From Obrimoposthia wandeli (taxonomy: Eukaryota): a stretch of 64,000 nt of DNA. Shown piece by piece: positions 19,527 to 57,207 of the stretch. The stretch lies in contig CDROCS010005398.1 of the NCBI GenBank assembly GCA_977020255.1, positions 1 through 64,000 on the forward strand. The letters are read 5' to 3'. Every line of letters starts with the position of its first letter. Position 1 is the first letter of the stretch. The position numbers were made by a program, and so were the translations under genes. The notes under the pieces were generated by a model. That model was not told the DNA's origin. It ran no database searches and was given only the letters and a program-made list of their open reading frames with translations.

Positions 19527-19530
19527 AACA

Positions 19531-19615: not shown

Positions 19616-19686
19616 ACTAACTATCAACTTATCAGCAGGTAATACTGACAAGGGTCGATAACATCACCTTAGCGTGTTATCAAATA

Positions 19687-19764
19687 TGGGGGCGACTGAA
19701 GGGGATTCATCCCTCGACAACCGGAATCACAATCCGGGGCTCTACCAACTGAGCGACAACCGCC
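19687..19764 (-). pseudogene. Degenerate tRNA-His(GTG)
   Basis: Compared with the intact copy at 56881, the T-loop TTCAA is changed to ATGAA, there is an extra C before CCA, and position 9 is C. Confidence 0.8.
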
Positions 19765-41228: not shown

Positions 41229-41273
41229 CTATGTTGTAACAGACTATGTTGTAACAGACTATGTTGTAACAGA
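41229..41273. repeat. 15-bp tandem repeat x3 (CTATGTTGTAACAGA)
   Basis: Three exact units; a single variant unit is present in copy 3 (about 56166-56180). Confidence 0.95.
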
Positions 41274-41609
41274 CTAAAGTGCAGCAGCTTCTACGTCAGC
41301 TACAAGTGCGTTTATTTGCGCGATATTGTCTGTCATTTCAGCACGGAAATCATCCGCAACCGTTTTAACAGGTAGCGTAAGGTAAGTTTCAAGCTGTACA
41401 ACTAACAACTTCAATAACGCAGATTAAGTCGCCGTATTTTGCTCTTATTCTAACGCTAACAATGCAGAACTAATTGCAAAGTGTTGTGTTTTTGGTTGGT
41501 CTGCTTTCGCTAAATGCCTATTTACTTTTAACTCAGCGTAATCAACAAATTGTAATTTAACGTCGATGTCGTTGTTTAGCTTTTCTAAAAATTGTGTATT
41601 ATCAGTCAT
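41274..41609 (-). pseudogene. Hypothetical 'gene X', second copy with a nonsense mutation
   Basis: Paralog of 56181-56516. The codon TAC (Tyr) is TAA at 41424-41426. Confidence 0.88.
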
Positions 41610-41677
41610 ATGTATACCTTTGTTTTTAAATGCTTACTTAAACCAATAAGCAGCAATTTTTGAAAAATGGTATAACG

Positions 41678-41707
41678 AAAAAAAGCCTGCTCAATGAGCA
41701 GGCTTTT
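41678..41707 (-). terminator. tRNA operon terminator, copy 2
   Basis: AAAAAAAGCCTGCTCAATGAGCAGGCTTTT. Confidence 0.8.
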
Positions 41708-41736
41708 CCGAATTCCAATTACTTGGAATAAATAAG

Positions 41737-41813
41737 TGGTCGGTGATAGAGGATTCGAACCTCTGACCCCCTGGTTCCAAACCAGGTGCGCTACCAAGCT
41801 GCGCTAATCACCG
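41737..41813 (-). tRNA. tRNA-Pro(TGG), G37A variant
   Basis: Identical fold to the other copies, but the anticodon loop reads TT TGG AA instead of TT TGG GA. Confidence 0.85.
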
Positions 41814-42045
41814 AACATGGTGCGGAAGGAAAGACTTGAACTCTCACACCCTAAGATACTATACCCATGATCTTTGATAATGCTTCTCATCGAGAAAAAA
41901 GAATTGAAATTTAATTTAATAAGATCAAACTAGGAACATGAAAATATTACTCACTATTAGGCGACAATTAACTTGTCCGGTTGACGACAACTAGCTTGGC
42001 CGGTTTTGGTACACTCTAAGCATATGAAATCTTTCGGAGATCGAT

Positions 42046-43544
42046 ATGCCTGGGAAGCCCATAACCCAACAACAGGTTAAGTTATATATGTCTTATCGTA
42101 ATCAACCCAAACAATCTCAGGCTAAAGCAGCAGCGAAAGCCGGTATATCAGAGCGAACAGCTCGACGTATTGATACTCAGCAACATCAAGTGCAAGGTCA
42201 GCCAAGACAATACCGTACGCGTAAAGATCCATTTGATGGCTTGTTCGAGGCACATCTAGTGCCGTTATTAAAAACTAATCCGGCCTTACAACCAATTACC
42301 CTACTCGATGCACTAGAAGAGCATGCGCCTGGCAAATTCGACCATAAGCACTTGAGAACCCTGCAACGCAGGGTTAAACGCTGGCGAGCTAAAGAAGGAC
42401 CAGATCAAGAAGTTATATTCCTTCAACTTCACACTCCCGGTGATATGGGGATCTCTGATTATACTTGGGCAAATGAACTCAATATTTCGATTGCAGGTGT
42501 CTCTTTCAAACATAAACTTTATCACTATCGTTTGGTCTATAGCGGCTGGACATATGTGCAAACAATACTCGGTGGAGAAAGCTTTGAATCGCTTTCTTCT
42601 GGCTTTCAAAATGCACTCTGGGCAAGTGGTGGCGTGCCACTGAAACACCGTACTGATAGCCTTAGCGCTGCATTTAAAAATCACACTGAAGAGACGATAC
42701 TCACCCAGCGATATGAAGCTCTATGCAAACATTATGGAGTCAACCCGACCCGAAATAACAAAGGGGTCGCGCATGAAAACGGGGCAATTGAATCCCCAAA
42801 TCGTCATTTAAAACGGAAAATGGAGCAGCAGCTACTGTTGAGAGGAAGTCGTGACTTTAATGCGCTGGCCGACTACAACCAGTTCATCAATCTAATTGTC
42901 GCGAAAATTAATCGCCAGTGTAAAACACGATTTGAAGAAGAAAAAGTGCATCTCTCAGCACTACCTTGTCGTCGTACTAATGAATTTAGCGAGCAATTTG
43001 TCAAAGTATCATCAAGCAGTACTATCAATGTAAAAAGAGTGACTTACACAGTGCCATCACGACTTATCGGCAGTGGATTACTGGTACACATTTTTGATGA
43101 CCGATTAGTATTATTCTACGGCCATGAGCTAACACTTACGCTTGATCGCGTTTATGCTGAAGCTCCTTTACGAGCTCGCAGCATCAACTATCGGCATATT
43201 ATTCATTCCTTGGCCAAAAAACCGAATGCATTTAAGTGTTCACGCATTCGTGACGACATCGTTCCTGTTGGTGATATGTCACTGCTGTGGCAGCAATTAA
43301 CAGCTCATAGCGTGAGCGACTCTGATTGTAAATACATGGTTAACTTACTGTTGCTTGCACACAATTATGATTGTGAGGGAGCACTAGGCGTTATGTATTA
43401 GCGAGTATTGAAAGCGGTCAGCGAGCCACCATTGAGCAGTGCAGAAAATTGTTCGGCCCTGAACGAATTGAAGTGCCGAAGATTAGCACTCAACAACACA
43501 GTCTTAGTGGTTATGATAATTTAATCGGAGGGTTAAATGGCTAA
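42046..43544 (+). CDS. istA: IS21 transposase IstA (1-bp frameshift near 43390)
   Basis: HTH, DYTW, GGVP..HRTDSL, GVAHENGAIES. The tail continues in another frame to TAA at 43542-44. Confidence 0.88.
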
Positions 43545-44308
43545 TGGGCCGTACAAAGCTTACCTATATTGCTCTGGGAAGAGTTACGAGCATGCCATTG
43601 CTAAAGCATGGCCGGAATTGTCAAAGAAAGCAGTCGAAGAACAGTGGCAACCAGAAGTATTTCTCGCTGAGCTCTGTGAAATAGAAGCGTCACATCGCTA
43701 TGAAAACAAACTAAAACGTTTATTAAAAGACAGCCAATTGCCCATTGGGAAACAGTTGTCACAGTATGATTTCAGTGAGGTATCGGGGATCTCAGCACAG
43801 CAAATAAAACAAAAAATGCAGAACTTGGACTGGCTTAGGCAGGGTCACAATATCTTATTATTTGGCGCTAGCGGGCTTGGTAAAACGCATCTAGCCTCAG
43901 CGCTAGGTTACGCCCTCATTGAGCAATCAGTTCGGGTTAAATTCAGTACCAGTACGGCCTTAGTGCAGTTGTTACAGAGGGCAAGAGAAGAACTTAGGCT
44001 CGAGGAAGCGCTCAATAAATTAGACAAATACGAGCTGTTGATACTTGATGATATTGGTTATGTGAAAAAGAGTGACAGTGAAAGTCAGGTGTTATTTGAG
44101 TTGATCGCACATCGTTATGAACGTGGAAGTCTTTTGATTACAACAAATCAAGCGTTTAGTGAGTGGGATAGTATATTTGGTGACAATATGAGGACCAGCT
44201 GCAGCGATCGACAGACTTGTACATCACGCGGTAATTTATCAAATAGAAGGGGAAAGTTATAGAAAGAAACAAGCAATGAAATCGAATGCTAAAAACCGGC
44301 CAAGTTAA
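43537..44308 (+). CDS. istB: IS21 helper ATPase IstB (frameshifted ends)
   Basis: GASGLGKTHLA, LLILDDIGY, ITTNQAFSEWDSIFGD. AAIDRLVHHA...EGESYRKK appears in a shifted frame. Confidence 0.88.
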
Positions 44309-45476
44309 TTGACGCCAACCGGCCAAAGTAGTTGACGTCTAATACTCACACACCAAGAAAAGCTAACCTTAGAGTCACGCCACAGAAAAAGCAGTGATAA
44401 ACGTGAGTGTGACCGAATTAAAGCAATTTTACTCTCTGCTGAAGGTTGGTCAACAATGATGATATCTCAAGCTCTTCGAAATCATCAAACAAGTATTATT
44501 CGTCACCTAAATGATTATATATCTAATGAGAAACTCACTTCAGAAAATGGTGGTTCAGATAGTTATTTGAATGAAGTACAAACAGAAGTCGCTATCGCTC
44601 ATCTAAGTGATATTACTTACTTTCATATGCATGATATTCGAGACTATATAAAAGACACTTTTGATGTTGAATATTCAATTTCAGGTTTGCACAAATGGCT
44701 TCATCGTAACGGCTTTAGCTACAAGCAGTTAAAAGGCGTTCCTCACAAATATGAGCAAGAAAAACAAGATGTTTTTGTTGAGGAGTATGAAGTACTAAAG
44801 GCAACGGTAGCAAGCGATGAGCCTATTTTATTCATGGATGCAACACATCCTACCCAAGCGACAAAAGTCAGCAATGCCTGGATACAAACAGGAAGAGATA
44901 AGCCAATAGAAACGACAGGCTCACGTACTCGATTAAATATTGTAGGCGCAATAAGATTGGGTCATTTAGAGGATGCAATTACGCAACAATATCCGACTGT
45001 AAATGGCGAATATATAATTGATTTTTTTTGCTGTGTAAAAGAGAAATATCCTCAAAGGAAGACAATTCATTTAATACTTGATGGTGCAGGATATCACCGT
45101 AGTAAGGTCGTCAAAAGTAAAGCGATAGAATTAGGCATTGAACTTCATTATTTGCCCCCCTACAGTCCAAATTTAAACCCTATTGAGCGGTTGTGGAAAG
45201 TAATGAATGAGCATGCAAGAAATAACAAGTATTTTTCATCAGCCAAAGAATTTCGACTGAGCATAGATACCTTTTTTGATGAGACTCTACCCAATATAGG
45301 GAATACTTTGAATGGTAGAATCAATGACAAATTTCAAACCTTCGACTTTTCATCTTGAAAGGCGACGGGTATAGAACCTAAGTCTAGCGTGTCTGCCACT
45401 TTCGCACTAACTATCAACTTATCAGCACGTAATTCTGGCAAGGGTCGATAACATCACCTTAGCGTGTTATCAAATA

Positions 45477-45553
45477 TGGGGCGACTGAAGGGGATTGAAC
45501 CCTCGACAACCGGAATCACAATCCGGGGCTCTACCAACTGAGCGACAACCGCC
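45477..45553 (-). tRNA. tRNA-His(GTG), C9 variant
   Basis: G-1, CCGGA TT GTG AT TCCGG, intact T-loop; position 9 is C as in copy 1. Confidence 0.85.
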
Positions 45554-45618
45554 ACAAACTTGTTGTTAATTTCGCGATGTAATTATAAATAATACATTAG
45601 CAAAACTAATCTTAAAAA

Positions 45619-45664
45619 TGGTAACCCCTATAGGATTCGAACCTATGGCCTACGGCTTAGAAGG
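45619..45664 (-). repeat. 3' 46 nt of tRNA-Arg(TCT): att-like duplicated half
   Basis: Matches 57020-57064 (1 mismatch) and ends just 5' of the anticodon loop. Confidence 0.9.
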
Positions 45665-45687
45665 TTATACAGGGCCAAACTAGCGCT

Positions 45688-45780
45688 TGGTGTTTAATCG
45701 GTGTAAATTTGTTTTAACTTACTTTTCAGTTAGATAGAATCGAACTTAAAATTACCCATTTACACCGTTCTTCACCGTTC
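45688..45780. repeat. Short direct and inverted repeats next to the half tRNA (possible integrase arm-type sites)
   Basis: TACACCGTTC-TTCACCGTTC tandem (45761-80); inverted CGGTGTAAAT (45699-708) versus ATTTACACCG. Confidence 0.45.
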
Positions 45781-46174
45781 TAGCTACGTTAATCGTAATT
45801 ATGGTCACAATGTATTGCATCGAAAGTGAACAATAAATTGTTGATATAATTCTGGCCACCAGCGATTGGGCAGCTATAAATGACGATTATGTTTTCTAAT
45901 ATGGATCTAATTAGTGGTGCTACTTTATATATTTTTTAAACTTCAGCTGTGAAAGTGATGAACACAATCGTTGAAATTGATGCTATCAAAGATCAACTTA
46001 ATACGGGTCTTGTTCGACAACGCATCAATTCAGATAAAATAAAAATTGAACTAGATGACTTATAAAATCGTGTGACGGATTCTGCAGCATAACGCGATGA
46101 CTGGTGCTAACCAAGCTAAGCGAAAATATTTTCGACCAATTTGATAAGCAACAGCAATTGAATCTGGACTAAAA

Positions 46175-47233
46175 CTACTCGTCTGCACCTTTAGGTCGAC
46201 GCATATTACAAGTCTGACAAAGTGGATTAGTCATGTAATTCTCACGTAAGTGATGGTATTCAGTACTGTGCCAAATATCTGCCACAGATTTTTGATTCAG
46301 GTTACCAAAATTTCCCAATTTTTTTCGTTGCTGATCTGGTGCACAACAAACATTAAAACGCCCATTTGGATCTACCCACATCTCTTTGCCAAGAAAAGGA
46401 CACTCCCCCTCTGGAGAAATATTATCTATTTCCGTTGGATCCAATTCAAAAAAGTTTTCGAGTAACATCTTATGTTCGCTAACATGATTGTGCCTATCTA
46501 CAATGTCATGGCAAATTTTCACGGTCTCATTCCAACACTTTATTGAGTCACTATCCTTACGCAATGATAACGATTTTATCTCTTCAAAATGTGCCCATAA
46601 ATGATGACCTTTTACACGGTCAAAACCAAGTTCAATGGCCATTTCGACCATCTGTGGGATCTCGGCTATATTCGACTCCAAAAATGTTAATTGCATTGTC
46701 ATTTTACAATAATTATTGGTATCTTTAGCCACTTGATCACGAACAGCAATAAAACGCTTAGCATGATCTATGTGCTGCGTAAAACTAGACCGTGGCATGA
46801 TTTGCTCTTGTGTTTTAGCTGTTGCTCCATTCCATGAAATCTTAACATCACTGCCAATCGGTGTTATCCGCGTGGCCCAGTATTCAACGTTCTTTTCTTT
46901 CTCCGGACTTGGGAAAGTACCATTTGTTGTAAGGTTTATTTTTAGATTAAGCTCTTCACACAAATCTAAAATCAAATCAAAATGTCGATATAAAAGTGGC
47001 TCACCCATTGTTGAAGGAATAAGCTCTGTTATGCCAATCTCAGCAGCTTCTCGTACAACTTTTTCTACCAGCGCCTTATCCATATTTTTTCGTTGGGTTC
47101 CATTTCGCTTTCGCTCACTCTGAGGTTCAGCATGAATAGAATGATCCTCACACATAACACAATTTAGGTTACATTGATCAGGGTTAGTATCAATTGTTAT
47201 ACGCCACGGTTGAGTAGCCCTATTTTTTTTCAT
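46175..47233 (-). CDS. Radical SAM protein with C-terminal SPASM/twitch domain
   Basis: CNLNCVMC, TMGEPLL, TTNGT; C-terminal CPFLG..WVD.NG...VCC...GNL....DIW...CQTC. Confidence 0.92.
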   Translation of the reverse strand: MKKNRATQPWRITIDTNPDQCNLNCVMCEDHSIHAEPQSERKRNGTQRKNMDKALVEKVVREAAEIGITELIPSTMGEPLLYRHFDLILDLCEELNLKINLTTNGTFPSPEKEKNVEYWATRITPIGSDVKISWNGATAKTQEQIMPRSSFTQHIDHAKRFIAVRDQVAKDTNNYCKMTMQLTFLESNIAEIPQMVEMAIELGFDRVKGHHLWAHFEEIKSLSLRKDSDSIKCWNETVKICHDIVDRHNHVSEHKMLLENFFELDPTEIDNISPEGECPFLGKEMWVDPNGRFNVCCAPDQQRKKLGNFGNLNQKSVADIWHSTEYHHLRENYMTNPLCQTCNMRRPKGADE

Positions 47234-48522
47234 ATCAATCCCTTATATATTTCTTCCATATCTCTTATTTGTTTGGTGATATCTGGAATGTCGCCATTAT
47301 CACTAAACGGATAGCCTCGTTTACCTAATTTTTCTGACCACGAGGGATCATCAACCATACGCTGCATCTGCTTGGCCATATCTTCAACTGAACGATGTTC
47401 AAATAACAAGCCATTGACGTCATGGTGAACATACTCCGCCATACCGCCTGTATTTGCAGTAATAACAGGAACTCGCGCTTGCTGCGCTTCATGAATAACT
47501 AAAGGAGAGTTTTCCACCCAGATTGAAGGTACAACGATCGCATCAACTTGATTGAATACATCACGAACTATCTCTTGATTCTTATATTCAGCCACCCATT
47601 CAATTTTTTCACATTTCCCTTTTGGTAAGGCTGCAGCAATATCTTTTAGCGCTTTTGTCTCCTGGCCATGCTCCCTGCCCCAGATACGTAATATCGCATC
47701 TCCTTGAACCAACCCAAAAGCATTAATCAATTGATGGATCCCCTTCGCTGGAATATGCGTACCAATGTAACCAAAAGTAAATGATGGTTCTTGATTGCGT
47801 TCACGGTTTTTCATTCTTTCGCGATCGAAACCATAATCGAGATAAACGCTTTTTTCCTTTGGTAACCCAAAATCTTGTTCATAACGATTTTTAAGGTAAT
47901 GGGCTGGAGAAATAAACAGATCAACCTGATCAACTACTTGACGAATATGTGCCATTCTCCTTTCTACCCAGCCCTCCCAATAAGCAATATCAATTTCTCT
48001 TTCTTCATTAGCTCCTGAAAAATAACGAGCATAGCATTGTGTTGCACATTTTTTGTTTTCTTGACCATCACAAGCAGCCCACAAGTTCTGTTCTTGAGAA
48101 TGCATCTGCATGAACTGCCCTCGAGGGCACATCAACCAATAGTCATGTAATGTATATACAACAGGAATATTATTTTTCTTTGCTTCAAAAACAAGTGATG
48201 TGGATAAGTGATTAAGGTGACCAATATGCACTATATCTGGTTTCACTTGCTCAAGTACTTTTGCAAATTCTTGGTCAATGACATCCAAACGGTAACGGTC
48301 TTTATGCCTAGGGTTATTCGTTATATATAATTTAATGCGTGGATCATCAACGTCAGTTTCATAACGCATTGCCCCATCAGCTCTAAAAGGGTCTTCTTCT
48401 CGTGTAAATACATGAACCTCATGCCCTTGTGCAGCAAGGCCAAGGCAAAGTGTTTGAGAATATACTTCAGAACCCGCATTATAACGCATAGGATAACCAT
48501 GGATAACTTTCAAAATCTTCAT
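47230..48522 (-). CDS. Glycosyltransferase family 4 (GT-B)
   Basis: KPDIVHIGHL, YTLHDYWLMCPRG, VPSIWVENSPLVIHEA, GGMAEYV...NGLLF. Confidence 0.92.
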   Translation of the reverse strand: MKILKVIHGYPMRYNAGSEVYSQTLCLGLAAQGHEVHVFTREEDPFRADGAMRYETDVDDPRIKLYITNNPRHKDRYRLDVIDQEFAKVLEQVKPDIVHIGHLNHLSTSLVFEAKKNNIPVVYTLHDYWLMCPRGQFMQMHSQEQNLWAACDGQENKKCATQCYARYFSGANEEREIDIAYWEGWVERRMAHIRQVVDQVDLFISPAHYLKNRYEQDFGLPKEKSVYLDYGFDRERMKNRERNQEPSFTFGYIGTHIPAKGIHQLINAFGLVQGDAILRIWGREHGQETKALKDIAAALPKGKCEKIEWVAEYKNQEIVRDVFNQVDAIVVPSIWVENSPLVIHEAQQARVPVITANTGGMAEYVHHDVNGLLFEHRSVEDMAKQMQRMVDDPSWSEKLGKRGYPFSDNGDIPDITKQIRDMEEIYKGLI

Positions 48523-48525
48523 GTT

Positions 48526-49431
48526 TTATTCACCTAACTCTTTTAATTTAAAATCATTCACCAACAGCTCAATACCTTGCTTAGGTGTCACTTTAGCCTT
48601 CCAGCCTAAAAGTAACTTGGCACGCTCAGGATCACCAACAAAACGACTGACATCATATCTACGTGAGGGAGCAACTTGGATGGTCGCATCACTTTGTGCA
48701 GCTTGAATGGCAAACTCAGCCGCTTCTTGCAAAGTCGTCGCAATACCTGGTAATAAATGAATTGGCGGTAAGTCCATAATTCCCGATTCCAGTTTTGAGA
48801 TAATTAGCATTAACCCATCGATAGTGTCGGTGATATGTGTAAAGTCAAATGTATGATTCAACCCATCAACGCGTAGTTGTTCACCTAAAACTGCTGCGCG
48901 ACAAAATGCTGGTAGTACTCTATCTACATGATCATCGATACAACCGTATACATTGGCTAATCGTACAATAGCAGTTTGTAACCCCTGTACTCTTGCCGTC
49001 ATTGTCGAATCTTCCATTGCCATTTTAGATCTACCATAAATATTCACAGGATTCACAACACAGCTTTCAGCAACGGGCAGTTCAGTGGGTTCCCCATACA
49101 CTTCCCTACTACTTGCAACTAACACCCAAGGTGACAACTCACTTTCTAAAGCAATTTTAAGCAATTTCTGGCTTGCCTCCGCATTAGTTTTCCAACATAA
49201 ATCAGGGTCATTCTCACCCCAAACTACGCGAGAGACAGCTGCAAGATGTACTACCCCAGAGCATCCTTGAATTGCCTTTCTAATTTGTTCTTCATTGCAA
49301 ATACTGCCTTTAAACTCAGCAAATTCAGCGACAAGATCCAATCCAACCACGTTAAAGCCGGCATGATTCAATGCAGCGGTTAGCGCCCGGCCCACCAGCC
49401 CTTCATGCCCGGTAATTAATATCTTTTTCAT
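48526..49431 (-). CDS. NAD-dependent sugar epimerase/dehydratase (extended SDR)
   Basis: ILITGHEGLVG, VVHLAA, ASSREVYG, YGRSK, RLANVYG, FDFTHITD. Confidence 0.92.
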   Translation of the reverse strand: MKKILITGHEGLVGRALTAALNHAGFNVVGLDLVAEFAEFKGSICNEEQIRKAIQGCSGVVHLAAVSRVVWGENDPDLCWKTNAEASQKLLKIALESELSPWVLVASSREVYGEPTELPVAESCVVNPVNIYGRSKMAMEDSTMTARVQGLQTAIVRLANVYGCIDDHVDRVLPAFCRAAVLGEQLRVDGLNHTFDFTHITDTIDGLMLIISKLESGIMDLPPIHLLPGIATTLQEAAEFAIQAAQSDATIQVAPSRRYDVSRFVGDPERAKLLLGWKAKVTPKQGIELLVNDFKLKELGE

Positions 49432-49487
49432 ACATATATCCTTACTTGAATTACTACAATACTTTATGCTTTACCATTGAGATGCTT

Positions 49488-51044
49488 CTAAGAAGACCAC
49501 AGGTATTTAACACCTAGATTTTTAGCTTCATCTATTGCTTGTTGGAATGAACCGACGATAGGCACACCACGTCCGTTAAATGAGGTATTTATCACCCCAT
49601 ATATCTGATATTCATCATGCAGTGTTCTTAAAATCTGATAAATATGGTTATTGTCGAAAGAGCTCTTGCTAATGACTTGGGCGCGTACTGAATCATCAGC
49701 ATGAATACAACCTGAAAATGCCATTTTCCATGTTGATTTTATCTGCCATGCGCCCAACATAAATAATGAAAGGTTTGAATCGGGTTTATAACCAATGAGT
49801 GCAGCTTCCGCTACTTCTGGGAGCATGATCGGCGCAACGGGTCGATACCATTCCCGTTGCTTAATGTCTTCGCTTAAATATTTTCTGAGTGATTTTGAGT
49901 CGGGGCGAATTAATAAACTTCGATGACCTAATGCTCTGGGGCCTATTTCAGCATCCCCTTTAAATACAGCCACAACTTCACCAGCTGCGATAAGCGCTGC
50001 CGCCTTAGCACTTTCTTGAAATACTTCAATACCTTCTGTATTAACCCCATCGCTATCATCTATATGATTTAAAAAAGCATTGTGAATTTTTATCTCGCTG
50101 CCCTTTTGCCACTCAAAGAATGCTGCAGCGCCCAATGCGAGCCCGCAATCGCTTGGTGCTGGCGGTATGTATATATTTTTAAATCCCAATTCACGCTCAA
50201 TTCTTGTATTAACATGAATATTTAAGGCCGCGCCACCTGAGTAATACAGTGAAGTAGCACCTGTATTTTTTTTGAATTTTTCGATATAGCTTAACGCTTG
50301 TATTTCTATTTCACGTTGCATGCAGGCAGCAATGTCAGCACCTTTCATACCTTCAACATCAACTATTTCGGCATTGTCCATATACCAGTTATTTGTCTTT
50401 AAATTCTGATGCAAAGCTTGGGAATATTGACCGTAACTTGCTAGCCCCATCAGTTTTCCAGGTAAAGATAAATGATCGTCAAGCGATAAGTTTAATATTC
50501 TGGCAGACAATGGATTGGCGTTAAAATTATTCACAGCCTGCTTTAGCTTTGCATGCCAGCTATGATCTAAATGACATATTTTTTTGCCATCAAAATACCA
50601 TGCTGATGCGCAGGATTTCGATGCGCCACCATCAATATGGATAAGTAAACTATTTGCTTTAAAGCCACCAAAGAAAGGTAAGCATGTACCAATGTGAGCC
50701 ATCTCATGTGCAATAACATGTTTATTTTCAGCTGTCTTTTTAAGCATCTCTTCAATAGCAAAGTTCGTGATATCGTCAAATATAACGTCACCACAGTCAC
50801 TATGAAATTGATTGCTCATAAACGAATTAGCCAACACCCATTGCACATCATCTTCATTGTTTAACCAAGGCTTGAGTAGTTTACTAATATATTCATTCAG
50901 TCTGCCATCATGTTTATGCTGCGTGAACCTTTCTAACTCGCAGCTGTAAATAACAGCGCCATTTTGCATAACAGCAACACCATGATCATGAGAACGGTAT
51001 TGCCCCGTGACATCCGCATCGCCATATACTCCAATCGTAAACAT
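49488..51044 (-). CDS. O-carbamoyltransferase (NodU/CmcH/TobZ family)
   Basis: SHD, ELERF..HKH, HEMAH, IDGG, GKLMGLASYG, GGAALN, SDCGLALGAA, EIGPRALGHRS, REWYRPVAP, NTSFN. Confidence 0.93.
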   Translation of the reverse strand: MFTIGVYGDADVTGQYRSHDHGVAVMQNGAVIYSCELERFTQHKHDGRLNEYISKLLKPWLNNEDDVQWVLANSFMSNQFHSDCGDVIFDDITNFAIEEMLKKTAENKHVIAHEMAHIGTCLPFFGGFKANSLLIHIDGGASKSCASAWYFDGKKICHLDHSWHAKLKQAVNNFNANPLSARILNLSLDDHLSLPGKLMGLASYGQYSQALHQNLKTNNWYMDNAEIVDVEGMKGADIAACMQREIEIQALSYIEKFKKNTGATSLYYSGGAALNIHVNTRIERELGFKNIYIPPAPSDCGLALGAAAFFEWQKGSEIKIHNAFLNHIDDSDGVNTEGIEVFQESAKAAALIAAGEVVAVFKGDAEIGPRALGHRSLLIRPDSKSLRKYLSEDIKQREWYRPVAPIMLPEVAEAALIGYKPDSNLSLFMLGAWQIKSTWKMAFSGCIHADDSVRAQVISKSSFDNNHIYQILRTLHDEYQIYGVINTSFNGRGVPIVGSFQQAIDEAKNLGVKYLWSS

Positions 51045-51048
51045 ATAG

Positions 51049-52317
51049 CTAACCTTTATATTCAGAGATTAAACGAACCGATAAATCATTGCCCGATTTA
51101 ACAAAACAGATTCCAGCTAGATAATCACACCAATCATTTCTATTAGGTACTTTCAAACCAAGAAATGACATCAAGCATACAATATGCAGATCATGGGAAA
51201 CCAAAACAGAAATTGATTCTTTAGATAGCTGACTTTTAACAAAATCAATTAACTCGTTTGAAGCATCTGCAATTGGTCGCATACCACTCGCAAAACCAGT
51301 CGTAACATAGTGTTCAATAAAAGCATAAAAATCCGCCGCCATTTCTGATTCATGTTCAGAAGAACCATCAAAATATACACCGGGATCACCTAGTAATGGA
51401 TTTAATTCTATAGGCTGTTGTGAGTCATAACTTGATAATATATCGCGCCCTGTTTCAACGCAGCGTGGTACAGGACTAGTGATGACCTTAAGTTTTTCAG
51501 CCGGAGTAAAAAATGATCCAAATACAGTAGCACGCTCTTTACCTTGTCCCGTTAAGGTGACGTCATGACCCCAGTTCGGCGTATCGGCATGAATAACTTG
51601 CCTCTCGGCGTGTCTAACTAGCATTACCATCTGATCGTTATCACCAATCATATCGTTTATAGTAGCTATATTGACTGGAGGATATTTTTGTAAAATCAAG
51701 GTATAGTGGCCATTCTCATGCAAACGTACCAACTGACCATCCAGTGTTTCACAAAATGCATAGTTATTGTAAAACGGCTCCGCGCGTTTAAAACGATGTT
51801 GGTAAATCGCATTTCCATTAACATTAATATGAAAGAAACCATGCTCATCTCTAACGACCGCAAAACCTTTATGGAAAGGTTCAGCATATTCAAAACTATG
51901 ATTATATATTCGCTGTCCAACGTGATTAATATGAAATGCTTTTTCTCCTTGATACGCAACGGCACGTTCATAACGGTAGTCACCCACATAACTAAATCGA
52001 CTTACGTAAACGGGCTCACCAGTCTTATCGATATGATAAAATCCCGTACCGTCTTCAACAACGCAAACATTACCTTGAAAATTACCTGACCATTTAAATT
52101 TATGGGAATGAATAGTCCCTCCCAACACATCAATATGAAAATAACCTAACTCATCAACAACCGTTGCCACGGCATTATAAAAACCAAATGTTTTTATAAA
52201 TCGATGTGAGTAAGCTTCTTTTTCATTCTCATAAATATGATATGCACCCGAAGTATCTATCACGGCAGCAAGTCCTTCTGGAAAATGAAAACTCATTCTT
52301 TGTTGTTCATCTATCAT
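51049..52317 (-). CDS. WG/KWG-like repeat protein fused to a C-terminal histidine phosphatase domain
   Basis: About five ~36-aa repeats (F..G.A.V.D..G.(Y/F)HI...G..(I/A)Y...F); then LVRHAE, SPVPRCVETG, VLVSHD. Confidence 0.8.
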   Translation of the reverse strand: MIDEQQRMSFHFPEGLAAVIDTSGAYHIYENEKEAYSHRFIKTFGFYNAVATVVDELGYFHIDVLGGTIHSHKFKWSGNFQGNVCVVEDGTGFYHIDKTGEPVYVSRFSYVGDYRYERAVAYQGEKAFHINHVGQRIYNHSFEYAEPFHKGFAVVRDEHGFFHINVNGNAIYQHRFKRAEPFYNNYAFCETLDGQLVRLHENGHYTLILQKYPPVNIATINDMIGDNDQMVMLVRHAERQVIHADTPNWGHDVTLTGQGKERATVFGSFFTPAEKLKVITSPVPRCVETGRDILSSYDSQQPIELNPLLGDPGVYFDGSSEHESEMAADFYAFIEHYVTTGFASGMRPIADASNELIDFVKSQLSKESISVLVSHDLHIVCLMSFLGLKVPNRNDWCDYLAGICFVKSGNDLSVRLISEYKG

Positions 52318-52399
52318 TCGTTCACCTAATTAAATCCATTAATAACAATGATAATTAAAGGCAATGCAAAAATTTGTTATTGCCCTTAAGAAGCTACAT

Positions 52400-52603
52400 T
52401 TACCAAGCTCTTTGTTGTTTAGTTAAATGCCAACCTCGCCCATTAGGACACTGGTATACCCGAAGTTTGACGTACTCTGTTTCCGCTAAAAAATCAGCGG
52501 TTTCTTGAGCCTCAGACTTTGAGCCATAGGTTGTTTTTACCTTGCCACCAGCACCTGTACAACTTTGACATAGTTCATTAGCGTTCATTATTTCCATGTA
52601 CAT
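52400..52603 (-). CDS. Small Cys/His protein, putative Zn-binding
   Basis: CQSC...YQCPNGRGWHLT; first ORF after the sigma54 promoter. Confidence 0.65.
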   Translation of the reverse strand: MYMEIMNANELCQSCTGAGGKVKTTYGSKSEAQETADFLAETEYVKLRVYQCPNGRGWHLTKQQRAW

Positions 52604-52696
52604 ATTGATATCCTTATTTTGGTTAAGCTCTTATGAGCAAGATTCAATACGCTAAATCCATACATCTAAATTGAACTGCGCACTTACTTTATGTAT

Positions 52697-52712
52697 TGCA
52701 CAACAGATGCCA
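52697..52712 (-). promoter_or_regulatory. Sigma54 (-24/-12) promoter for the island B operon
   Basis: Minus strand TGGCATCTGTTGTGCA, with GG and GC at the canonical spacing of TGGCACG-N4-TTGC; divergent from a sigma54 activator. Confidence 0.72.
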
Positions 52713-52881
52713 AGTTAAAATTAACTACAAGATAAAACAAATTAATCAAATATAACAATTACTTAAATTATAAGTTTGACGAAGGACTCATTTCAGCATT
52801 AATTAATTTACATAAGACTTAACTTTTATGTAAATTAAAACAAACATAAAGGTTAATCTAATTTGATCATTTAAGGAATTA

Positions 52882-54726
52882 ATGATGACAGGAACATTTA
52901 CTTTCATAACTCCTTTTTTCCAACGCCACGGAGTTGGATATCTGGACGTTATATTACACACAGTGGATAAAGAGCATGACTCACTGTCAAGTGCCGGTTA
53001 TCAATCGAAAGAACATGACCAATATGATGCATTCACTAACACATTAAAAAATGGAAAATTAAGCCAACTTAACAAAGTTTTTTACTTATTACCTAAAGGG
53101 TATAAAAACCACAAAGACGCACCTTCGCGATGGAAAGAATTTGTATCGAAAGAAAAAATCAATTTGATCAAAGAAAGTATCGAATCAACATCTAACAACC
53201 CAAAAAATAGCGAGGTAGATCTAGACAAATTAATCACGTATTTGAATAAAGAAGATGGATTGTTTCCTAGTTATGAATGGTTAAAAGGTGAGTGGCGAGA
53301 AATGCCCGATCTTTGGCATATCATTAACGAGTTCAGCCTTGCGACTCAGGTTGAATGGTATAAGAATCATTCACCTGTGTATCAAAAGCATAATGCTCTA
53401 ATTCATTTTGTTGAAATAGACACAACATATTCTCAATTAGAAAATGAATATGAAGTAACTGCTGCATTAAAAAAATGGACTCAGCAAGAGATATTTAACG
53501 AACATACATATATTAACCTCTGGGGAACTGCCACAGCATTTCAACTGGCATGGCACTATTTAGCTTGGTCATCACCAAGGTTAAAACCCATTAGCTTCAT
53601 AAAATGTAAAACATTAAAAGCGACTAAAGATAAACAGCGATTTACCCCACTAATAATCGAATCAGTAAACAAAAATTTATTAGACAAATTAGAACAACAC
53701 AGTCAAAAATCAACATTATCCCAACAACAAAATAATACTGCAGCATGGCTAAAAAAGTATAAAAGTCTTGATGATAACTTTACGATCTTACTTCTAGGTC
53801 CAAAAGGCACTGGTAAGACAAAAGTCGTAGCTGAAATATATAATGAAAACAGCACCGGTAAAGATAACCGAATAATATCTATTAACTGTGCTCAGTTTCA
53901 AAGTAACCCAGAAATTGCACGTAGTGAGCTTTTTGGACATGTAAAAGGATCATTTACTGGTGCTAATGAGAATAAAGAAGGGGCATTTAACGAAGCTAAT
54001 AATAAAGTCTTATTCTTAGATGAGATTCACCATCTTGATAAAGCAACACAATCGATGCTTTTAACCGCGTTACAAACTGATAATGAAGGTTTTTTCAGGT
54101 TTTCTGCGTTAGGAACTACCAATATCCAAACAACAAAATTTCAGCTTATTGTCGCAAGTAATATAAAACACGAAAGTTTAGAAGCCCATATACTCCCCGA
54201 TCTCTTAGACCGTATCAGTCAACGGGTATTAAAATTTGATGCTTTAAAATCCGGAACCACAATAAAAAAAGAATTTAATAGTGTATGGATGTTCATGAAA
54301 ATCTCAGAAGACGCCGTAAACCCCTTACTCTCAGGTGTAAAAACTTACGACTCTAGATTCGAAAAATGGCTAACTAAAACATCACATACATTTGAAGGAA
54401 ATTACCGAGATTTACAAAAAATAGCCATTCTGTGCGCAGACTATCAACGCAGCTGCGATAATCCAGATTTAATACCATCAGACCTTTCTTTGGTTGAATA
54501 TATTAAAACTAATTGGAGAATAAAGACCCGTAAAAAAGACATTACGATTGAGAACTTCCTTGATGAGCATAATCGTCTATCTCTCAAAGAGATCACTAAT
54601 GAATTTAAATCCAAATTAGTCCGTTCAGCTGAAATATTATGTGGAGATCAAAAATCTGCAGCAAAAATGCTTGGCATCACAGCTAAATCATTAATAGAAA
54701 TAAAGAAGAGAGATGAGCCGTCCTGA
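52882..54726 (+). CDS. Sigma54-interacting AAA+ activator, RtcR-like, with putative CARF-like N-terminal domain
   Basis: GPKGTGKT, INCAQF, SELFGHVKGSFTGA, LFLDEI, DLLDRI, GNYRDL, C-terminal Fis-type HTH (DQKSAAKMLGI); no receiver domain. Confidence 0.85.
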   Translation: MMTGTFTFITPFFQRHGVGYLDVILHTVDKEHDSLSSAGYQSKEHDQYDAFTNTLKNGKLSQLNKVFYLLPKGYKNHKDAPSRWKEFVSKEKINLIKESIESTSNNPKNSEVDLDKLITYLNKEDGLFPSYEWLKGEWREMPDLWHIINEFSLATQVEWYKNHSPVYQKHNALIHFVEIDTTYSQLENEYEVTAALKKWTQQEIFNEHTYINLWGTATAFQLAWHYLAWSSPRLKPISFIKCKTLKATKDKQRFTPLIIESVNKNLLDKLEQHSQKSTLSQQQNNTAAWLKKYKSLDDNFTILLLGPKGTGKTKVVAEIYNENSTGKDNRIISINCAQFQSNPEIARSELFGHVKGSFTGANENKEGAFNEANNKVLFLDEIHHLDKATQSMLLTALQTDNEGFFRFSALGTTNIQTTKFQLIVASNIKHESLEAHILPDLLDRISQRVLKFDALKSGTTIKKEFNSVWMFMKISEDAVNPLLSGVKTYDSRFEKWLTKTSHTFEGNYRDLQKIAILCADYQRSCDNPDLIPSDLSLVEYIKTNWRIKTRKKDITIENFLDEHNRLSLKEITNEFKSKLVRSAEILCGDQKSAAKMLGITAKSLIEIKKRDEPS

Positions 54727-54736
54727 TAACGGTCAG

Positions 54737-55636
54737 TTATTCTAGCCCTCCTTTTTGGTAGCCGACGCGCATACTCAGGTATTGAGCCAAGGCTAATAAA
54801 ATATTTATAGGGCTAATTTTCGCAGGCAAAAATAGCGTGGGTTTTAGATCTAACTGATACTTCAGCGCCAATTGTTTATTTCCTCTGCCATAGCGTTTAA
54901 ACCGATTAATAAAACCAATAAAACCATCATCAAATTCATGCTGAGTGCAACTCGCGAATTGGTAGTCGATCTCACCCACCTCTAGTAACCTGAAGGCCAG
55001 ATCAATATCTTCACCACCAGCCTGTTTAAACTCAGGATCAAAAAAGCCTACTTGTCTTATTGCTGATTTTTGGATCAGGCAGTTGGCTGTAACCAAGTAA
55101 TCGGGGCGCTTTCTTTCTAAATATGTCGCTTCAGGAGGGATGAGTGTCTCTTGAGTTTTATAATAACGAGAAAGGTAATCATCCGACACAACATCTATTC
55201 CACCAGCGTAAGCTAATACTTTATTATTATTAGTACAGTATCCAGATATGGTGCTTACCGTTGGTATGCAGTCCGAATCGGTAAACAATATCCACTCTCC
55301 ATTTGCCAACGACACACCTTTATTTCTTGCTGCCGCAGGCCCCACTTCCTTACAAGTTGAAAGAATTAGAGATGTAGGATAATCATTCGGTAAATGCAAT
55401 GCTGGGGTCGAATTATTATCAACAATAATTATTTCTTGTGGATAATGTTCAACAGAAGTGACTTCGGTAAACTCAGCTAAAAAACGATCAATACCAGCCT
55501 GATTATTTTTGACTGGAATGACTACACTGATATTTTTAGCCTCAATGTTCTTTAATGTTTCTAACGTTTTCTTTTTATTGGGGCTATAACCAAGTGTACT
55601 TAAAAGCGTCATACCAAAATCCTTGCAGATAAACAT
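54737..55636 (-). CDS. Glycosyltransferase family 2 (GT-A)
   Basis: ISVVIPVKN, IIIVDNNS, GPAAARNKG, ILFTDSDC, GFFDPEF...GEDIDL. Confidence 0.92.
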   Translation of the reverse strand: MFICKDFGMTLLSTLGYSPNKKKTLETLKNIEAKNISVVIPVKNNQAGIDRFLAEFTEVTSVEHYPQEIIIVDNNSTPALHLPNDYPTSLILSTCKEVGPAAARNKGVSLANGEWILFTDSDCIPTVSTISGYCTNNNKVLAYAGGIDVVSDDYLSRYYKTQETLIPPEATYLERKRPDYLVTANCLIQKSAIRQVGFFDPEFKQAGGEDIDLAFRLLEVGEIDYQFASCTQHEFDDGFIGFINRFKRYGRGNKQLALKYQLDLKPTLFLPAKISPINILLALAQYLSMRVGYQKGGLE

Positions 55637-56069
55637 CTATATATCAAAACATAACTTAACAAAAAAACGTTGAGATATACAATAAATATCCACTGTAATG
55701 AATTAACAATACCTCTTTTACTGTGTGTGCGTAAAATCATTATCGTACATCAAACAGCTAGTAATATCGGATTCTAGCTTGTGAATGTGGGAATATCGGT
55801 ATTTCAATAAATAAGTCAATTATCGGAAACCTCTCGATGATTTCATCTACCACGTGTTTCTTGAAGGGCGTTAACCAGTGTGAATTAAGACCAAATTGTT
55901 ACCAAGAAGCATTTAGCTAATGTTATTTTAACAACATCACAGCTATCAAATGCGGATCTTAACAGCATTCTCGAGATCGTTAAATGCAAAGACACCATAC
56001 ATCATTGTCGAGTAAACAGGTGGCAATTCACGACCTCATTAAAAATTATTTTTATTAACGCCTAAAACC

Positions 56070-56097
56070 AAAAAAGCCTGCATCTTCAGCAGGCTTT
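56070..56097 (-). terminator. Terminator downstream of gene X
   Basis: AAAAAAGCCTGC-atcttca-GCAGGCTTT; counterpart at 41139-41166. Confidence 0.75.
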
Positions 56098-56180
56098 CAT
56101 CTTTCTATATACTATTCACTAACACCATCAACTCAAACATGACTCCACATTCAAGTTAAAACAGTCTGTATTGTAACAGA

Positions 56181-56516
56181 CTAAAGTGCAGCAGCTTCTA
56201 CTTCAGCTACAAGCGCGTTTATTTGCGCGATATTGTCTGTCATTTCAGCACGGAAATCATCAGCAACTGTTTTAGCAGATAGCGTAAGGTAAGTTTCAAG
56301 CTGTACAACTAACAACTTCAATAACGCAGAGTAAGTCGCTGTGTTTTGCTCTTCTTCTAACGCTAACAATGCAGAGCTAATTGCAAAGTGTTGTGTTTTG
56401 GGTTGGTCTGCTTTCGCTAAATGCTTATTTACTTTTAACTCAGCGTAATCAACAAATTGTAATTTAACGTCGATGTCGTTGTTTAGCTTTTCTAAAAATT
56501 GTGTATTATCAGTCAT
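56181..56516 (-). CDS. Hypothetical helical protein ('gene X', 111 aa)
   Basis: RBS, ATG and own terminator. The paralog at 41274-41609 shows synonymous and conservative changes, which supports coding status. Confidence 0.75.
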   Translation of the reverse strand: MTDNTQFLEKLNNDIDVKLQFVDYAELKVNKHLAKADQPKTQHFAISSALLALEEEQNTATYSALLKLLVVQLETYLTLSAKTVADDFRAEMTDNIAQINALVAEVEAAAL

Positions 56517-56584
56517 ATGTAGGCCTTTGTTTTTAAATGCTTACTTAAACCAATAAGCAGCAATTTTTGAAAAATGGTATAACG

Positions 56585-56614
56585 AAAAAAAGCCTGCTCA
56601 ATGAGCAGGCTTTT
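56585..56614 (-). terminator. tRNA operon terminator, copy 3
   Basis: AAAAAAAGCCTGCTCAATGAGCAGGCTTTT. Confidence 0.82.
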
Positions 56615-56643
56615 CCGAATTCCAATTACTTGGAATAAATAAG

Positions 56644-56720
56644 TGGTCGGTGATAGAGGATTCGAACCTCTGACCCCCTGGTCCCAAACCAGGTGCGCTA
56701 CCAAGCTGCGCTAATCACCG
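56644..56720 (-). tRNA. tRNA-Pro(TGG)
   Basis: Full cloverleaf, CCA, 77 nt. Confidence 0.97.
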
Positions 56721-56724
56721 AACA

Positions 56725-56809
56725 TGGTGCGGAAGGAGAGACTTGAACTCTCACACTTTTCAATACTAGAACCTAAATCTAGCGCGTCTACCAATTCCGC
56801 CACTTCCGC
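56725..56809 (-). tRNA. tRNA-Leu(TAG)
   Basis: Full cloverleaf with variable arm, 85 nt. Confidence 0.97.
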
Positions 56810-56880
56810 ACTAACTATCAACTTATCAGCAGGTAATACTGACAAGGGTCGATAACATCACCTTAGCGTGTTATCAAATA

Positions 56881-56957
56881 TGGGGCGACTGAAGGGGATT
56901 GAACCCTCGACAACCGGAATCACAATCCGGGGCTCTACCAACTGAGCTACAACCGCC
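56881..56957 (-). tRNA. tRNA-His(GTG)
   Basis: G-1, T8A9, GTG anticodon, TTCAA T-loop, C73-CCA. Confidence 0.96.
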
Positions 56958-57019
56958 ACAAACTTTTACATCAACCCGCTTTGGTAAGCGAATTAACTTC
57001 TACTTTTACGTAGATAATA

Positions 57020-57096
57020 TGGTGACCCCTATAGGATTCGAACCTATGGCCTACGGCTTAGAAGGCCGTTGCTCTATCCAACTGAGCTAAGGAGTC
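57020..57096 (-). tRNA. tRNA-Arg(TCT)
   Basis: GACTCCTTAGCTCAGTTGGATAGAGC AACGGC CT TCT AA GCCGT...TTCGAAT...CACCA. Confidence 0.97.
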
Positions 57097-57097
57097 G

Positions 57098-57174
57098 TGG
57101 TCGGTGATAGAGGATTCGAACCTCTGACCCCCTGGTCCCAAACCAGGTGCGCTACCAAGCTGCGCTAATCACCG
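57098..57174 (-). tRNA. tRNA-Pro(TGG), first gene of the operon
   Basis: Identical to 56644-56720. Confidence 0.97.
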
Positions 57175-57207
57175 AACGTTGGAGGCAATGCCTTGTCAAC
57201 GAGGTGG

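Follow-up and report, generated by a model that had tools for sequence, protein, structure and literature searches.

The DNA analysed here (the window) is the whole stretch of 64,000 nt at the start of contig CDROCS010005398.1 in the Obrimoposthia wandeli assembly GCA_977020255.1. Within it lies an operon island (45665-56036) with eight annotated genes, whose coordinates we verified: a six-gene operon, a divergent activator gene and a gene for a family 2 glycosyltransferase (GT2). These genes and the promoter of the operon are as follows.

52603-46175, minus strand: six-gene operon, with junctions of 82, 4, 56, 3 and -4 nt
52697-52712, minus strand: sigma54 (-24/-12) promoter, TGGCAT-N5-GTGCA, 94 nt before the first ATG of the operon
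52400-52603, minus strand: leader of 67 aa, Cys3-His zinc-ribbon-like in translation (C12, C15, C52, H59; YxCPxxxGWHLTK)
51049-52317, minus strand: WG-repeat::His-phosphatase fusion of 422 aa (Pfam WG_beta_rep and His_Phos_1)
49488-51044, minus strand: O-carbamoyltransferase of the NodU/CmcH/TobZ family, 518 aa (Pfam Carbam_trans_N and Carbam_trans_C)
48526-49431, minus strand: extended short-chain dehydrogenase/reductase (SDR), a nucleoside diphosphate (NDP)-sugar epimerase/dehydratase of 301 aa (Pfam Epimerase, 133 bits)
47230-48522, minus strand: family 4 glycosyltransferase (GT4) of GT-B fold, 430 aa (Pfam Glycos_transf_1 and Glyco_transf_4)
46175-47233, minus strand: radical S-adenosylmethionine (rSAM) enzyme with SPASM domain, 352 aa (Pfam Radical_SAM and SPASM), its start overlapping the GT4 stop by 4 nt
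52882-54726, plus strand: sigma54 enhancer-binding protein (the activator) of 614 aa, divergent from the operon (Pfam Sigma54_activat, PF00158, 115 bits)
54737-55636, minus strand: GT2, convergent with the activator (Pfam Glycos_transf_2)

A ribosome-binding site (Shine-Dalgarno sequence) lies upstream of each operon gene. Our coordinates and domain assignments agree with an earlier note on this DNA, which had described six coupled minus-strand genes with these domains. Hydrophobic segments are absent from all operon proteins, indicating that they are soluble, which is in keeping with the cytoplasmic chemistry that the note had proposed. Its statement that no exporter, flippase, polymerase, nonribosomal peptide synthetase or polyketide synthase is encoded also holds for 45665-56036. 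In the promoter, GG and GC are canonically spaced and 9 of 11 consensus positions are matched. Across the whole window the motif alone is not rarer than chance (32 matches vs 38.7 expected at two mismatches), but in its own intergenic region and on its own strand it reached p ~0.0035 by shuffling, and an equivalent -24/-12 site was detected at p<0.05 in 10 of the 12 orthologous intergenic regions, bearing out the promoter that the note had called. The locus thus combines a -24/-12 promoter with a Sigma54_activat AAA+ activator that has Walker A/B motifs and a GAFTGA-type loop, as is characteristic of a sigma54 regulon.

The activator consists of a CARF-like sensor (residues 1-290, with a helical insert at 84-173), an AAA+ core (Walker A GPKGTGKT, LFLDEIH and a GSFTGA loop) and a C-terminal helix-turn-helix (HTH) domain. 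In its structural model (pLDDT, the predicted local distance difference test, of 85) the N-terminal domain is Rossmann-like, beta-alpha-beta with a helical insert, and Foldseek of the whole protein returned AAA+ matches only (NtrC1, FleQ, PspF). The PADLOC model RtcR_PspF1--CARF_AAA_HTH matched it at 208 bits over residues 260-608, the RtcR equivalog NF038308 gave 131 bits against a cut-off of 650 bits and covered residues 175-515 only, and the BLASTP alignment with E. coli RtcR was limited to the AAA+ core. An hhalign comparison of the sensor alignment with the CARF domain of E. coli RtcR reached a probability of 70% (E 4e-5), with only the second half of the sensor aligned; there INLWGTATAFQ of the sensor pairs with IHITTGTHVAQ of RtcR. 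The activator had been called RtcR-like; the likeness is remote, and rtcA and rtcB are missing. CARF domains are nucleotide or RNA-end sensors. The nucleotide or RNA-damage ligand that the note had proposed for the activator is purely inferential.

A profile of the sensor retrieved 101 clusters among 1.84 billion representatives, nearly all of them bacterial enhancer-binding proteins of 590-670 aa; canonical RtcR was not retrieved from that set. We looked up five members of this family, picked by activator search and independently of the WG search described below. Three flank a GT4/rSAM operon, the contig of one ends after a DUF4258 leader and a long open reading frame (ORF), and one (Photobacterium swingsii, L090:5856-11809), whose sensor is 45% identical, flanks a different operon. 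With four of the five counted as flanking such operons, the sensor family appears to be small and dedicated to GT4/rSAM operons, consistent with the claim that a dedicated sigma54 activator, here a CARF-like one, stands divergent from the operon. The P. swingsii operon encodes a 93-aa ORF, a 441-aa protein with multiple transmembrane segments, a 284-aa rSAM enzyme (not viperin) and a P-loop-kinase::phosphoribosyltransferase; this operon could represent a second output of the sensor family in nucleotide chemistry. A candidate activator-binding palindrome, AGGTTAAC-N5-6-TTAACCT, can be made out ahead of the promoter in Shewanella (L003:2151-2393) and Colwellia (L008:9283-9568), and in the intergenic region of the window (52604-52881) only its right half, AGATTAACCTTT, is clear; we do not claim this element.

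The fusion protein of the operon comprises a WG domain of six beta-hairpin repeats (residues 1-215) and a histidine phosphatase of branch 1 (residues 225-422), in which R235, H236, R239 and H375 are invariant among 18 homologues. Its AlphaFold model (pLDDT 93) shows the six hairpin repeats followed by a canonical His-phosphatase. With Foldseek, the phosphatase half resembled the small-molecule phosphatases RosC, CobC, fructose-2,6-bisphosphatase and phosphoserine phosphatase, and the WG half gave generic propeller-like similarity only (TM ~0.35). The fusion family is rare (66 matches in 5.8 billion proteins). The carbamoyltransferase scored 113 bits with the NodU profile, which is under the cut-off of that profile; its nearest solved structure is TobZ (125 bits), and the PHROG 'Nol-like carbamoyltransferase' covers its full length at 272 bits. 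For the SDR the nearest structures are UDP-hexose 4-epimerase (4zrm), MoeE5 (a UDP-GlcA 4-epimerase) and UDP-xylose synthases, and the GT4 is best matched, among solved structures, by sucrose-phosphate synthase (6kih) and BshA (5d00). A match of the GT4 to PF20706 ('GT4-conflict', 47 bits), a model derived from glycosyltransferases of vWA-MoxR effectors, was dropped as a lead to conflict systems; it is not specific, because it is weaker than the matches to generic GT4 models. The rSAM enzyme carries the CX3CX2C motif (CNLNCVMC) at residues 21-28. Its only solved match in the PDB was BtrN, a weak one, and among NCBIfam models it matched PqqE, ScmF, and sactipeptide and mycofactocin maturases.

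The layout of the window, with the activator divergent from one or more small ORFs followed by WG-His-phosphatase, carbamoyltransferase, epimerase, GT4 and rSAM genes, is repeated in three genomes (Vibrio sp. 2-Bac 85, Shewanella sp. 4_MG-2023 and a Colwellia metagenome-assembled genome (MAG)). It also occurs in a 94% relative, there with the GT2, and in an unrelated metagenomic contig found via the activator. In a second layout, seen in Myxococcota and other Proteobacteria, the activator is divergent from a DUF4258-like leader, a GT4::rSAM fusion, the WG-His-phosphatase and the carbamoyltransferase. With variations, the operon set was also found in Desulfobacteraceae and Myxococcota. The neighbourhood check that the earlier note had proposed therefore found a gene set conserved far beyond chance, in Vibrio, Shewanella, Colwellia, Desulfobacteraceae and Myxococcota.

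Scanning one genome per GTDB species (185,579 species representatives) with the WG-His-phosphatase alignment yielded 80 loci from Bacteria and Archaea, which included Thermoplasmata, Asgard, Bathyarchaeia, ANME-2, Bacteroidota, Planctomycetota, Myxococcota, Spirochaetota, Campylobacterota and others; about 100 of the species representatives fit the patterns. We annotated 84 loci with a WG domain by phmmer. An rSAM gene was present in 77/84 and a GT4 gene in 72/84, the absences being mostly due to contig ends, and the two were fused in 29/84. The partners varied: an epimerase was encoded in 33/84 loci, a carbamoyltransferase in 24/84 and a PF00891 O-methyltransferase in 31/84, and most loci had a phosphatase, either His_Phos_1 (33/84) or a PolB-nucleotidyltransferase fused to a protein tyrosine phosphatase (PTP)-like domain (22/84). 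As for the WG domain, it occurred by itself or in fusion with one of three enzymes (His-phosphatase, O-methyltransferase, P-loop kinase). What does not vary is thus the set of GT4, rSAM-SPASM and WG. Judged by family assignment, the variable part is made up of enzymes predicted to add or remove groups on hydroxyls; these partners, whose targets are hydroxyl or phosphate groups, take each other's place, and the exchange of one phosphatase type for the other is a non-homologous replacement. Versions with the PolB-type nucleotidyltransferase::PTP-like protein (Y_phosphatase3) in place of the His-phosphatase, at L053:7547-8962 and in 21 other loci, come from Bacteroidota, Planctomycetota and Archaea.

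The rSAM tree places the window, with strong support, in a clade whose six loci all bear the activator and come from Gammaproteobacteria, Desulfobacteraceae and Myxococcota. At large scale the coupling to the activator is patchy, since the activator label needs at least seven changes on this tree. The rSAM copy of a Vulcanococcus limneticus MAG (L048) sits on very short branches among the Bacteroidota copies L035 and L064, which points to a very recent transfer or a binning error. Genes for GTPases of MMR_HSR1/RsgA type or dynamin-like adjoin the system in Vibrio (L001:5542-6483) and Myxococcales (L009:13160-14407).

Leader genes are of two types, the zinc-ribbon type of the window's clade and a DUF4258-like type. 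The zinc-ribbon leader is 48-51% identical in the Vibrio and Colwellia loci and is also present in the 94% relative. It belongs to no Pfam or PADLOC family, matches PHROG 15216 weakly and has no relation to the DUF4258 leaders found in other lineages. A DUF4258-like small protein opens most activator-controlled operons, and one such leader exceeds the Pfam threshold. Homology between the Bacteroidota leader and the DUF4258-like leaders of Proteobacteria and Myxococcota is probable (hhalign probability 80%). DUF4258 has been described as an uncharacterised toxin family of the BECR/RelE-ParE superfamily (PMC11980606). Leaders are absent from the Shewanella locus and from all activator-less loci. 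In addition, a highly conserved 49-aa ORF rich in N, G and K overlaps the start of the zinc-ribbon leader in the Vibrio (L001:9223-9372) and Colwellia (L008:9569-9718) operons; it has weak relatives upstream of GT4::rSAM in loci L034 and L048 and was found neither in the window nor in Shewanella. Its product could be a peptide or a small protein with a regulatory role.

In five related loci, four from Bacteroidota and one without recorded taxonomy, a true prokaryotic viperin (pVip) is co-operonic with these genes under an activator of the window's family. The hosts include Saprospiraceae, Flavobacterium lacus and other Bacteroidota, and the activator there scores 253 bits on RtcR_PspF1--CARF_AAA_HTH. 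The genes overlap and run in the order 99-aa leader, pVip, GT4, rSAM-SPASM, nucleotidyltransferase::PTP or His-phosphatase, O-methyltransferase or carbamoyltransferase, and WG. These pVips score 275-300 bits on the PADLOC pVip models and are in one case followed by a CMP-kinase/VakA-like gene; the fifth viperin and GT4 operon (L092) was found through the activator search, its pVip scoring 200 bits (phmmer vs the pVip of L053). The rSAM enzyme of the window was rejected as a viperin (27.7 and 24.1 bits on the pVip models vs 275-300 for true pVips), and no pVip homologue exists among the window ORFs. We found no report in the literature of pVips regulated by sigma54 or CARF proteins or coupled to glycosylation. 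As regards catalogued defence systems, only the regulator matched PADLOC-DB v2.0 (through the CARF_AAA_HTH model), and the operon enzymes had no or trivial matches. The operon is thus unclassified in PADLOC, as had been anticipated. One related locus lies among TIR, HNH/McrA-SBD, WYL, Fic and AbiE genes and another beside MoxR-VWA.

Relatives also came from a phage. PHROG 21308, a GT4::rSAM fusion, matches both the GT4 (464 bits) and the rSAM enzyme of the window, and tblastn against phage records led to Wolbachia phage WO, with identities to the window proteins of 51-52% (GT4) and 44% (WG domain); with the GT4 half of WD0613 the identity is 52%. These genes belong to the Undecim Cluster (WD0611-WD0621; L088, Wolbachia WO MN180251.1 47345-66628), and in the rSAM tree the WO copy lies in the sister group of the window's clade. 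Related WG-methyltransferase genes are found on Rickettsia and Arsenophonus plasmids. A phage origin of the system was rejected, as IMG/VR held no relatives and Wolbachia WO gave the only phage records found.

We favour the reading that the operon encodes an inducible cytoplasmic pathway to an O-carbamoylated glycoside antimetabolite, probably derived from a nucleoside or nucleotide, for use in conflict or defence; we put its probability at roughly 45%. A ligand would bind the CARF-like N-terminal domain of the dedicated activator, whose AAA+ core would remodel sigma54-RNA polymerase at the -24/-12 promoter, so that the six-gene operon is transcribed. The SDR epimerase would provide an NDP-sugar, and the GT4 would join its sugar to an acceptor bearing a phosphate; a nucleotide or nucleoside is the likeliest candidate for this acceptor, followed by a sugar or cyclitol phosphate. 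The SPASM enzyme would then perform a radical oxidation or rearrangement on the glycoside, the His-phosphatase would take off the phosphate and the TobZ-like enzyme would O-carbamoylate a hydroxyl. The WG domain, always encoded beside the rSAM and fused to varying hydroxyl-tailoring enzymes, may serve as a substrate-binding or scaffold module. The product would be a toxic or antiviral antimetabolite made on demand only, like the products of viperin. The analysis shows the gene content, the catalytic motifs, the promoter, the synteny, the coupling of regulator to operon and the viperins in operons of relatives; acceptor, product, ligand and defence role are all inferred. Only associations point to a nucleotide or nucleoside as acceptor, namely those with viperin, CMP kinase, P-loop kinases, the PolB nucleotidyltransferase, phosphatases, the Photobacterium kinase::phosphoribosyltransferase operon and the CARF-like sensor.

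A small-molecule product is favoured because the nearest characterised relatives of the enzymes (TobZ, sucrose-phosphate synthase, BshA, BtrN, RosC, CobC) act on small molecules, because the methyltransferase is of the PF00891 class, the proteins are soluble and viperins use free nucleoside triphosphates (NTPs), and because the symbiont version has an extension resembling a biosynthetic gene cluster. This Wolbachia/alphaproteobacterial version adds an ABC exporter, a dioxygenase, enzymes dependent on pyridoxal phosphate (PLP) and NDP-sugar enzymes. Several observations nonetheless weigh against our preferred reading. Many activator-less versions occur in ordinary chromosomal settings and may be constitutive, and the Undecim Cluster is, according to the literature, highly expressed and not induced. 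The island of the window has no immunity gene or exporter and its operon neither viperin nor a DUF4258 leader, an enzyme supplying the acceptor is not encoded, and peptides or proteins are the more usual targets of SPASM enzymes. Moreover, 67 proteins flanking ten activator-bearing loci (PADLOC, Pfam) were mostly housekeeping. We therefore reject a consistent defence-island context as a general property of the system, and the enrichment in defence islands for which the earlier note had suggested a search was not borne out. Its idea of a chemical defence draws support from the viperins and DUF4258-like leaders of related operons but not from any consistent island setting; for a link to nucleotides and defence we also count the TIR, HNH, WYL, AbiE or MoxR-VWA genes beside some loci and the CARF-like nature of the sensor.

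The reading can be extended beyond the window, with the odds against it. It is possible, though doubtful, that GT4, rSAM-SPASM and WG form a widespread, hitherto unrecognised pathway to nucleoside analogues that are glycosylated and then carbamoylated, methylated or phosphorylated. Its activator branch would be a chemical defence induced by infection or damage, switched by the dedicated CARF-like sigma54 sensor and acting next to viperin or downstream of it, and the Undecim Cluster would use the same chemistry.

Among other explanations of the operon, the system could modify or repair RNA (e.g., tRNA), the CARF activator sensing damaged RNA, the enzymes healing or marking ends or bases and the WG domain binding RNA. 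The remote RtcR/CARF likeness of the activator argues for this, as does the swappable set of kinase, phosphatase, PolB-nucleotidyltransferase and methyltransferase, which can be likened to Pnkp/Hen1, the enzymes of RNA end-healing and 2'-O-methylation. Furthermore, the carbamoyltransferase fold (Kae1 plus YrdC) is common to t6A synthesis, GT4-family enzymes glycosylate the queuosine of animal tRNA, and the DUF4258 leaders fall in an RNase-toxin superfamily. We consider it unlikely all the same, given that RtcA, RtcB and a ligase are absent, that no known RNA-binding domain was detected, that the methyltransferase class and the nearest relatives of the phosphatase and carbamoyltransferase are of small-molecule type, that viperins work on free NTPs and that the Wolbachia version has an ABC exporter. 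Quite unlikely, too, is a protective or signalling metabolite outside conflict, i.e., a glycoside resembling osmolytes or redox thiols and switched on by physiological stress. Its synthesis would follow the logic of sucrose, glucosylglycerate, mycothiol or bacillithiol, with a GT4 acting on a phosphorylated acceptor and then a phosphatase, and sucrose-phosphate synthase, BshA and MshA are the best characterised relatives of the GT4; the phosphatase step is kept via non-homologous replacement, many loci lie among housekeeping genes, and the distribution is broad and ancient-looking, including Archaea. However, rSAM/SPASM and carbamoyl or methyl tailoring are atypical of osmolytes, and the system is rare and patchy (~100 of the 185,579 species representatives), mobile (islands, plasmids, a prophage) and, in relatives, co-operonic with viperin and toxin-family genes.

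Modification of a protein or peptide, whether as a ribosomally synthesised and post-translationally modified peptide (RiPP) or by glycosylation, would have the SPASM enzyme and GT4 act on the leader or another protein recognised by the WG domain. SPASM enzymes typically mature peptides or proteins and ours matches NCBIfam maturases, a small ORF opens every activator-controlled operon, Vibrio and Colwellia have the extra conserved 49-aa ORF, and the neighbouring GT2 is MftF-like. Yet the leader, which comes in two unrelated types, is in either case a conserved folded domain and is dispensable across the family, Pfam and NCBIfam matches revealed no RiPP recognition element (RRE)/PqqD domain, protease or exporter, the 49-aa ORF is not in the window and the tailoring enzymes are of small-molecule types, which makes this explanation improbable. 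Most improbable of all is a sigma54-regulated locus for modifying cell-surface polysaccharide or lipopolysaccharide (LPS). The locus does encode a NodU-like carbamoyltransferase, an epimerase and a GT4, with a GT2 nearby, and the literature annotates the Undecim Cluster as related to exopolysaccharide (EPS) or LPS, but a membrane protein, initiating phosphoglycosyltransferase, flippase, polymerase or exporter is conserved in 0/84 loci, the GT2 is not conserved, and the core occurs in Archaea and Wolbachia.

The GT2 gene, which had been described as accompanying the operon, does adjoin it. It is MftF-like (110 bits, under the model cut-off), is found beside the operon in the 94% relative only and is absent from all other related loci; from this distribution it is probably a lineage-specific neighbour outside the conserved system. 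The setting of the island is marked by the following features.

45382-45664: left island border, a duplicated tRNA-His and the 3' part of tRNA-Arg, copy of 56786-57065 (repeat families D2 and D5)
56037-56723: right island border, a duplicated segment ending in tRNA-Pro, copy of 41106-41816 (repeat families D1, D3, D4 and D6)
42046-43401 and 43537-44262: IS21 pair (IstA-like and IstB), between the two left repeat copies
44456-45358: IS630 transposase, between the two left repeat copies

The insertion sequences IS630 and IS21 (IS630 and IstB matches) lie immediately left of the left border, and an intact Leu-His-Arg-Pro tRNA cluster follows the right one. A Pro-Leu-His-Arg-Pro tRNA cluster is thus partly duplicated (41106-45664 and 56037-57177), with copies 94-100% identical and only the 3' 46 nt of tRNA-Arg retained in the left copy. 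The locus had been taken for a tRNA att site. The island does lie between duplicated pieces of a tRNA cluster, by IS21 and IS630, but no integrase was found in 45665-56036, and the layout looks more like recombination or duplication of the tRNA cluster than like a simple integrase att site. The island is also richer in AT than its surroundings, as had been claimed, although the difference is modest (37.7% GC vs 41.0% for the window; 34.5% in the activator gene). A third tRNA cluster, Pro-Leu-His, at 19450-19764, 37 kb upstream on the same strand, offers further recombination targets. The right duplicated segment contains a 111-aa ORF (56181-56516) without family match, whose left copy (41248-41547) is 94% identical in DNA.

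If true, our preferred reading would give viperin a counterpart in a second family of inducible radical-SAM antimetabolites, one with richer chemistry, place bacterial chemical defence under the transcriptional control of a CARF-type sigma54 activator and assign a function to the WG (KWG) repeat domain. It would also give a testable handle on the Undecim Cluster, which is carried by most arthropod Wolbachia and by Rickettsia/Arsenophonus plasmids; culturable Vibrio, Shewanella and Flavobacterium carry free-living versions, which lend themselves to study far more readily than those of endosymbionts. None of the enzyme families is unusual, and the core triad was known before, unexplained, from the Undecim Cluster. 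Our literature searches returned nothing relevant on the WG repeat, on GT4 with rSAM, carbamoyltransferase and RtcR, or on viperin with CARF and sigma54. In the literature searched, which did not cover the 2020 CARF census (this may mention regulator neighbourhoods), what appears to be new is the cross-domain GT4-rSAM-WG module with its swappable hydroxyl-tailoring partners, its dedicated family of CARF-like sigma54 regulators, the carbamoyltransferase/His-phosphatase variant, and the co-operonic viperin and DUF4258 link.

When compared with known systems, the locus resembles RtcR-RtcBA in its CARF-like sensor, sigma54 AAA+ core, HTH and divergent target operon with a -24/-12 promoter. The activator, however, fails the RtcR equivalog, its sensor is ~100 residues longer and has the helical insert, and the target genes are wholly different, the RtcA and RtcB families being unmatched by the operon proteins. 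The tailoring of aminoglycoside and nucleoside antibiotics brings together the same enzyme classes (TobZ, BtrN, BtrM/TunD-type GT4, TunG-type phosphatase) with family-level similarity only; the window lacks the scaffold enzymes of such clusters (2-deoxy-scyllo-inosose synthase, aminotransferases), a resistance gene and an exporter. A tunicamycin-like logic (TunA/TunB/TunD/TunG) was rejected because the SDR is not specifically TunA-like (TunA ranks 14th). Two further models were set aside: a surface polysaccharide locus, as 45665-56036 encodes soluble proteins and no initiating transferase, flippase/exporter or polymerase/ligase, and an rSAM-SPASM RiPP cluster, as there is no RRE, PqqD, protease or exporter and the leader is conserved rather than a variable-core precursor. 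With regard to pVip defence, viperin is the first enzyme in the five related operons and runs straight into the GT4-rSAM genes, and the shared logic that we propose is an antimetabolite made by a radical-SAM enzyme; the window operon differs in having no viperin, its rSAM being a SPASM enzyme.

The closest known relative is the Undecim Cluster, for which loose annotations name antibiotic production, methylation and EPS/LPS synthesis (PMC9203015). It was pointed out in 2015 that WD0612-0614 are syntenic in distant bacteria and that the KWG-repeat::O-methyltransferase fusion is an odd one (PMC4701759). The epimerase (UC2), GT4::rSAM-SPASM (UC3) and WG-repeat protein (UC4) of the cluster, whose domains we confirmed, are homologous to and syntenic with those of the window. 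The operon had been put forward as an undescribed system; it is unclassified in PADLOC, but its core equals UC2-UC4 of this named, uncharacterised cluster. The remainder differs: UC1 and UC5-UC11 are absent from the island, so that the 11-gene set is not complete there, and the Undecim Cluster has no carbamoyltransferase, sigma54 activator or leader gene. The WG domain of WO is fused to an O-methyltransferase-like region, whereas that of the window is fused to a His-phosphatase. The extra genes of the Undecim Cluster encode an NTP-transferase, a PhyH dioxygenase, an ABC exporter and two threonine-aldolase-like PLP enzymes, as well as, by record annotation, a glycerol-3-phosphate transporter and a UDP-glucose dehydrogenase. 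The pairing of a PhyH-type dioxygenase with threonine-aldolase-like PLP enzymes recalls the UMP dioxygenase and L-Thr transaldolase of high-carbon nucleoside antibiotics and, by this analogy, would fit a nucleoside-derived product.

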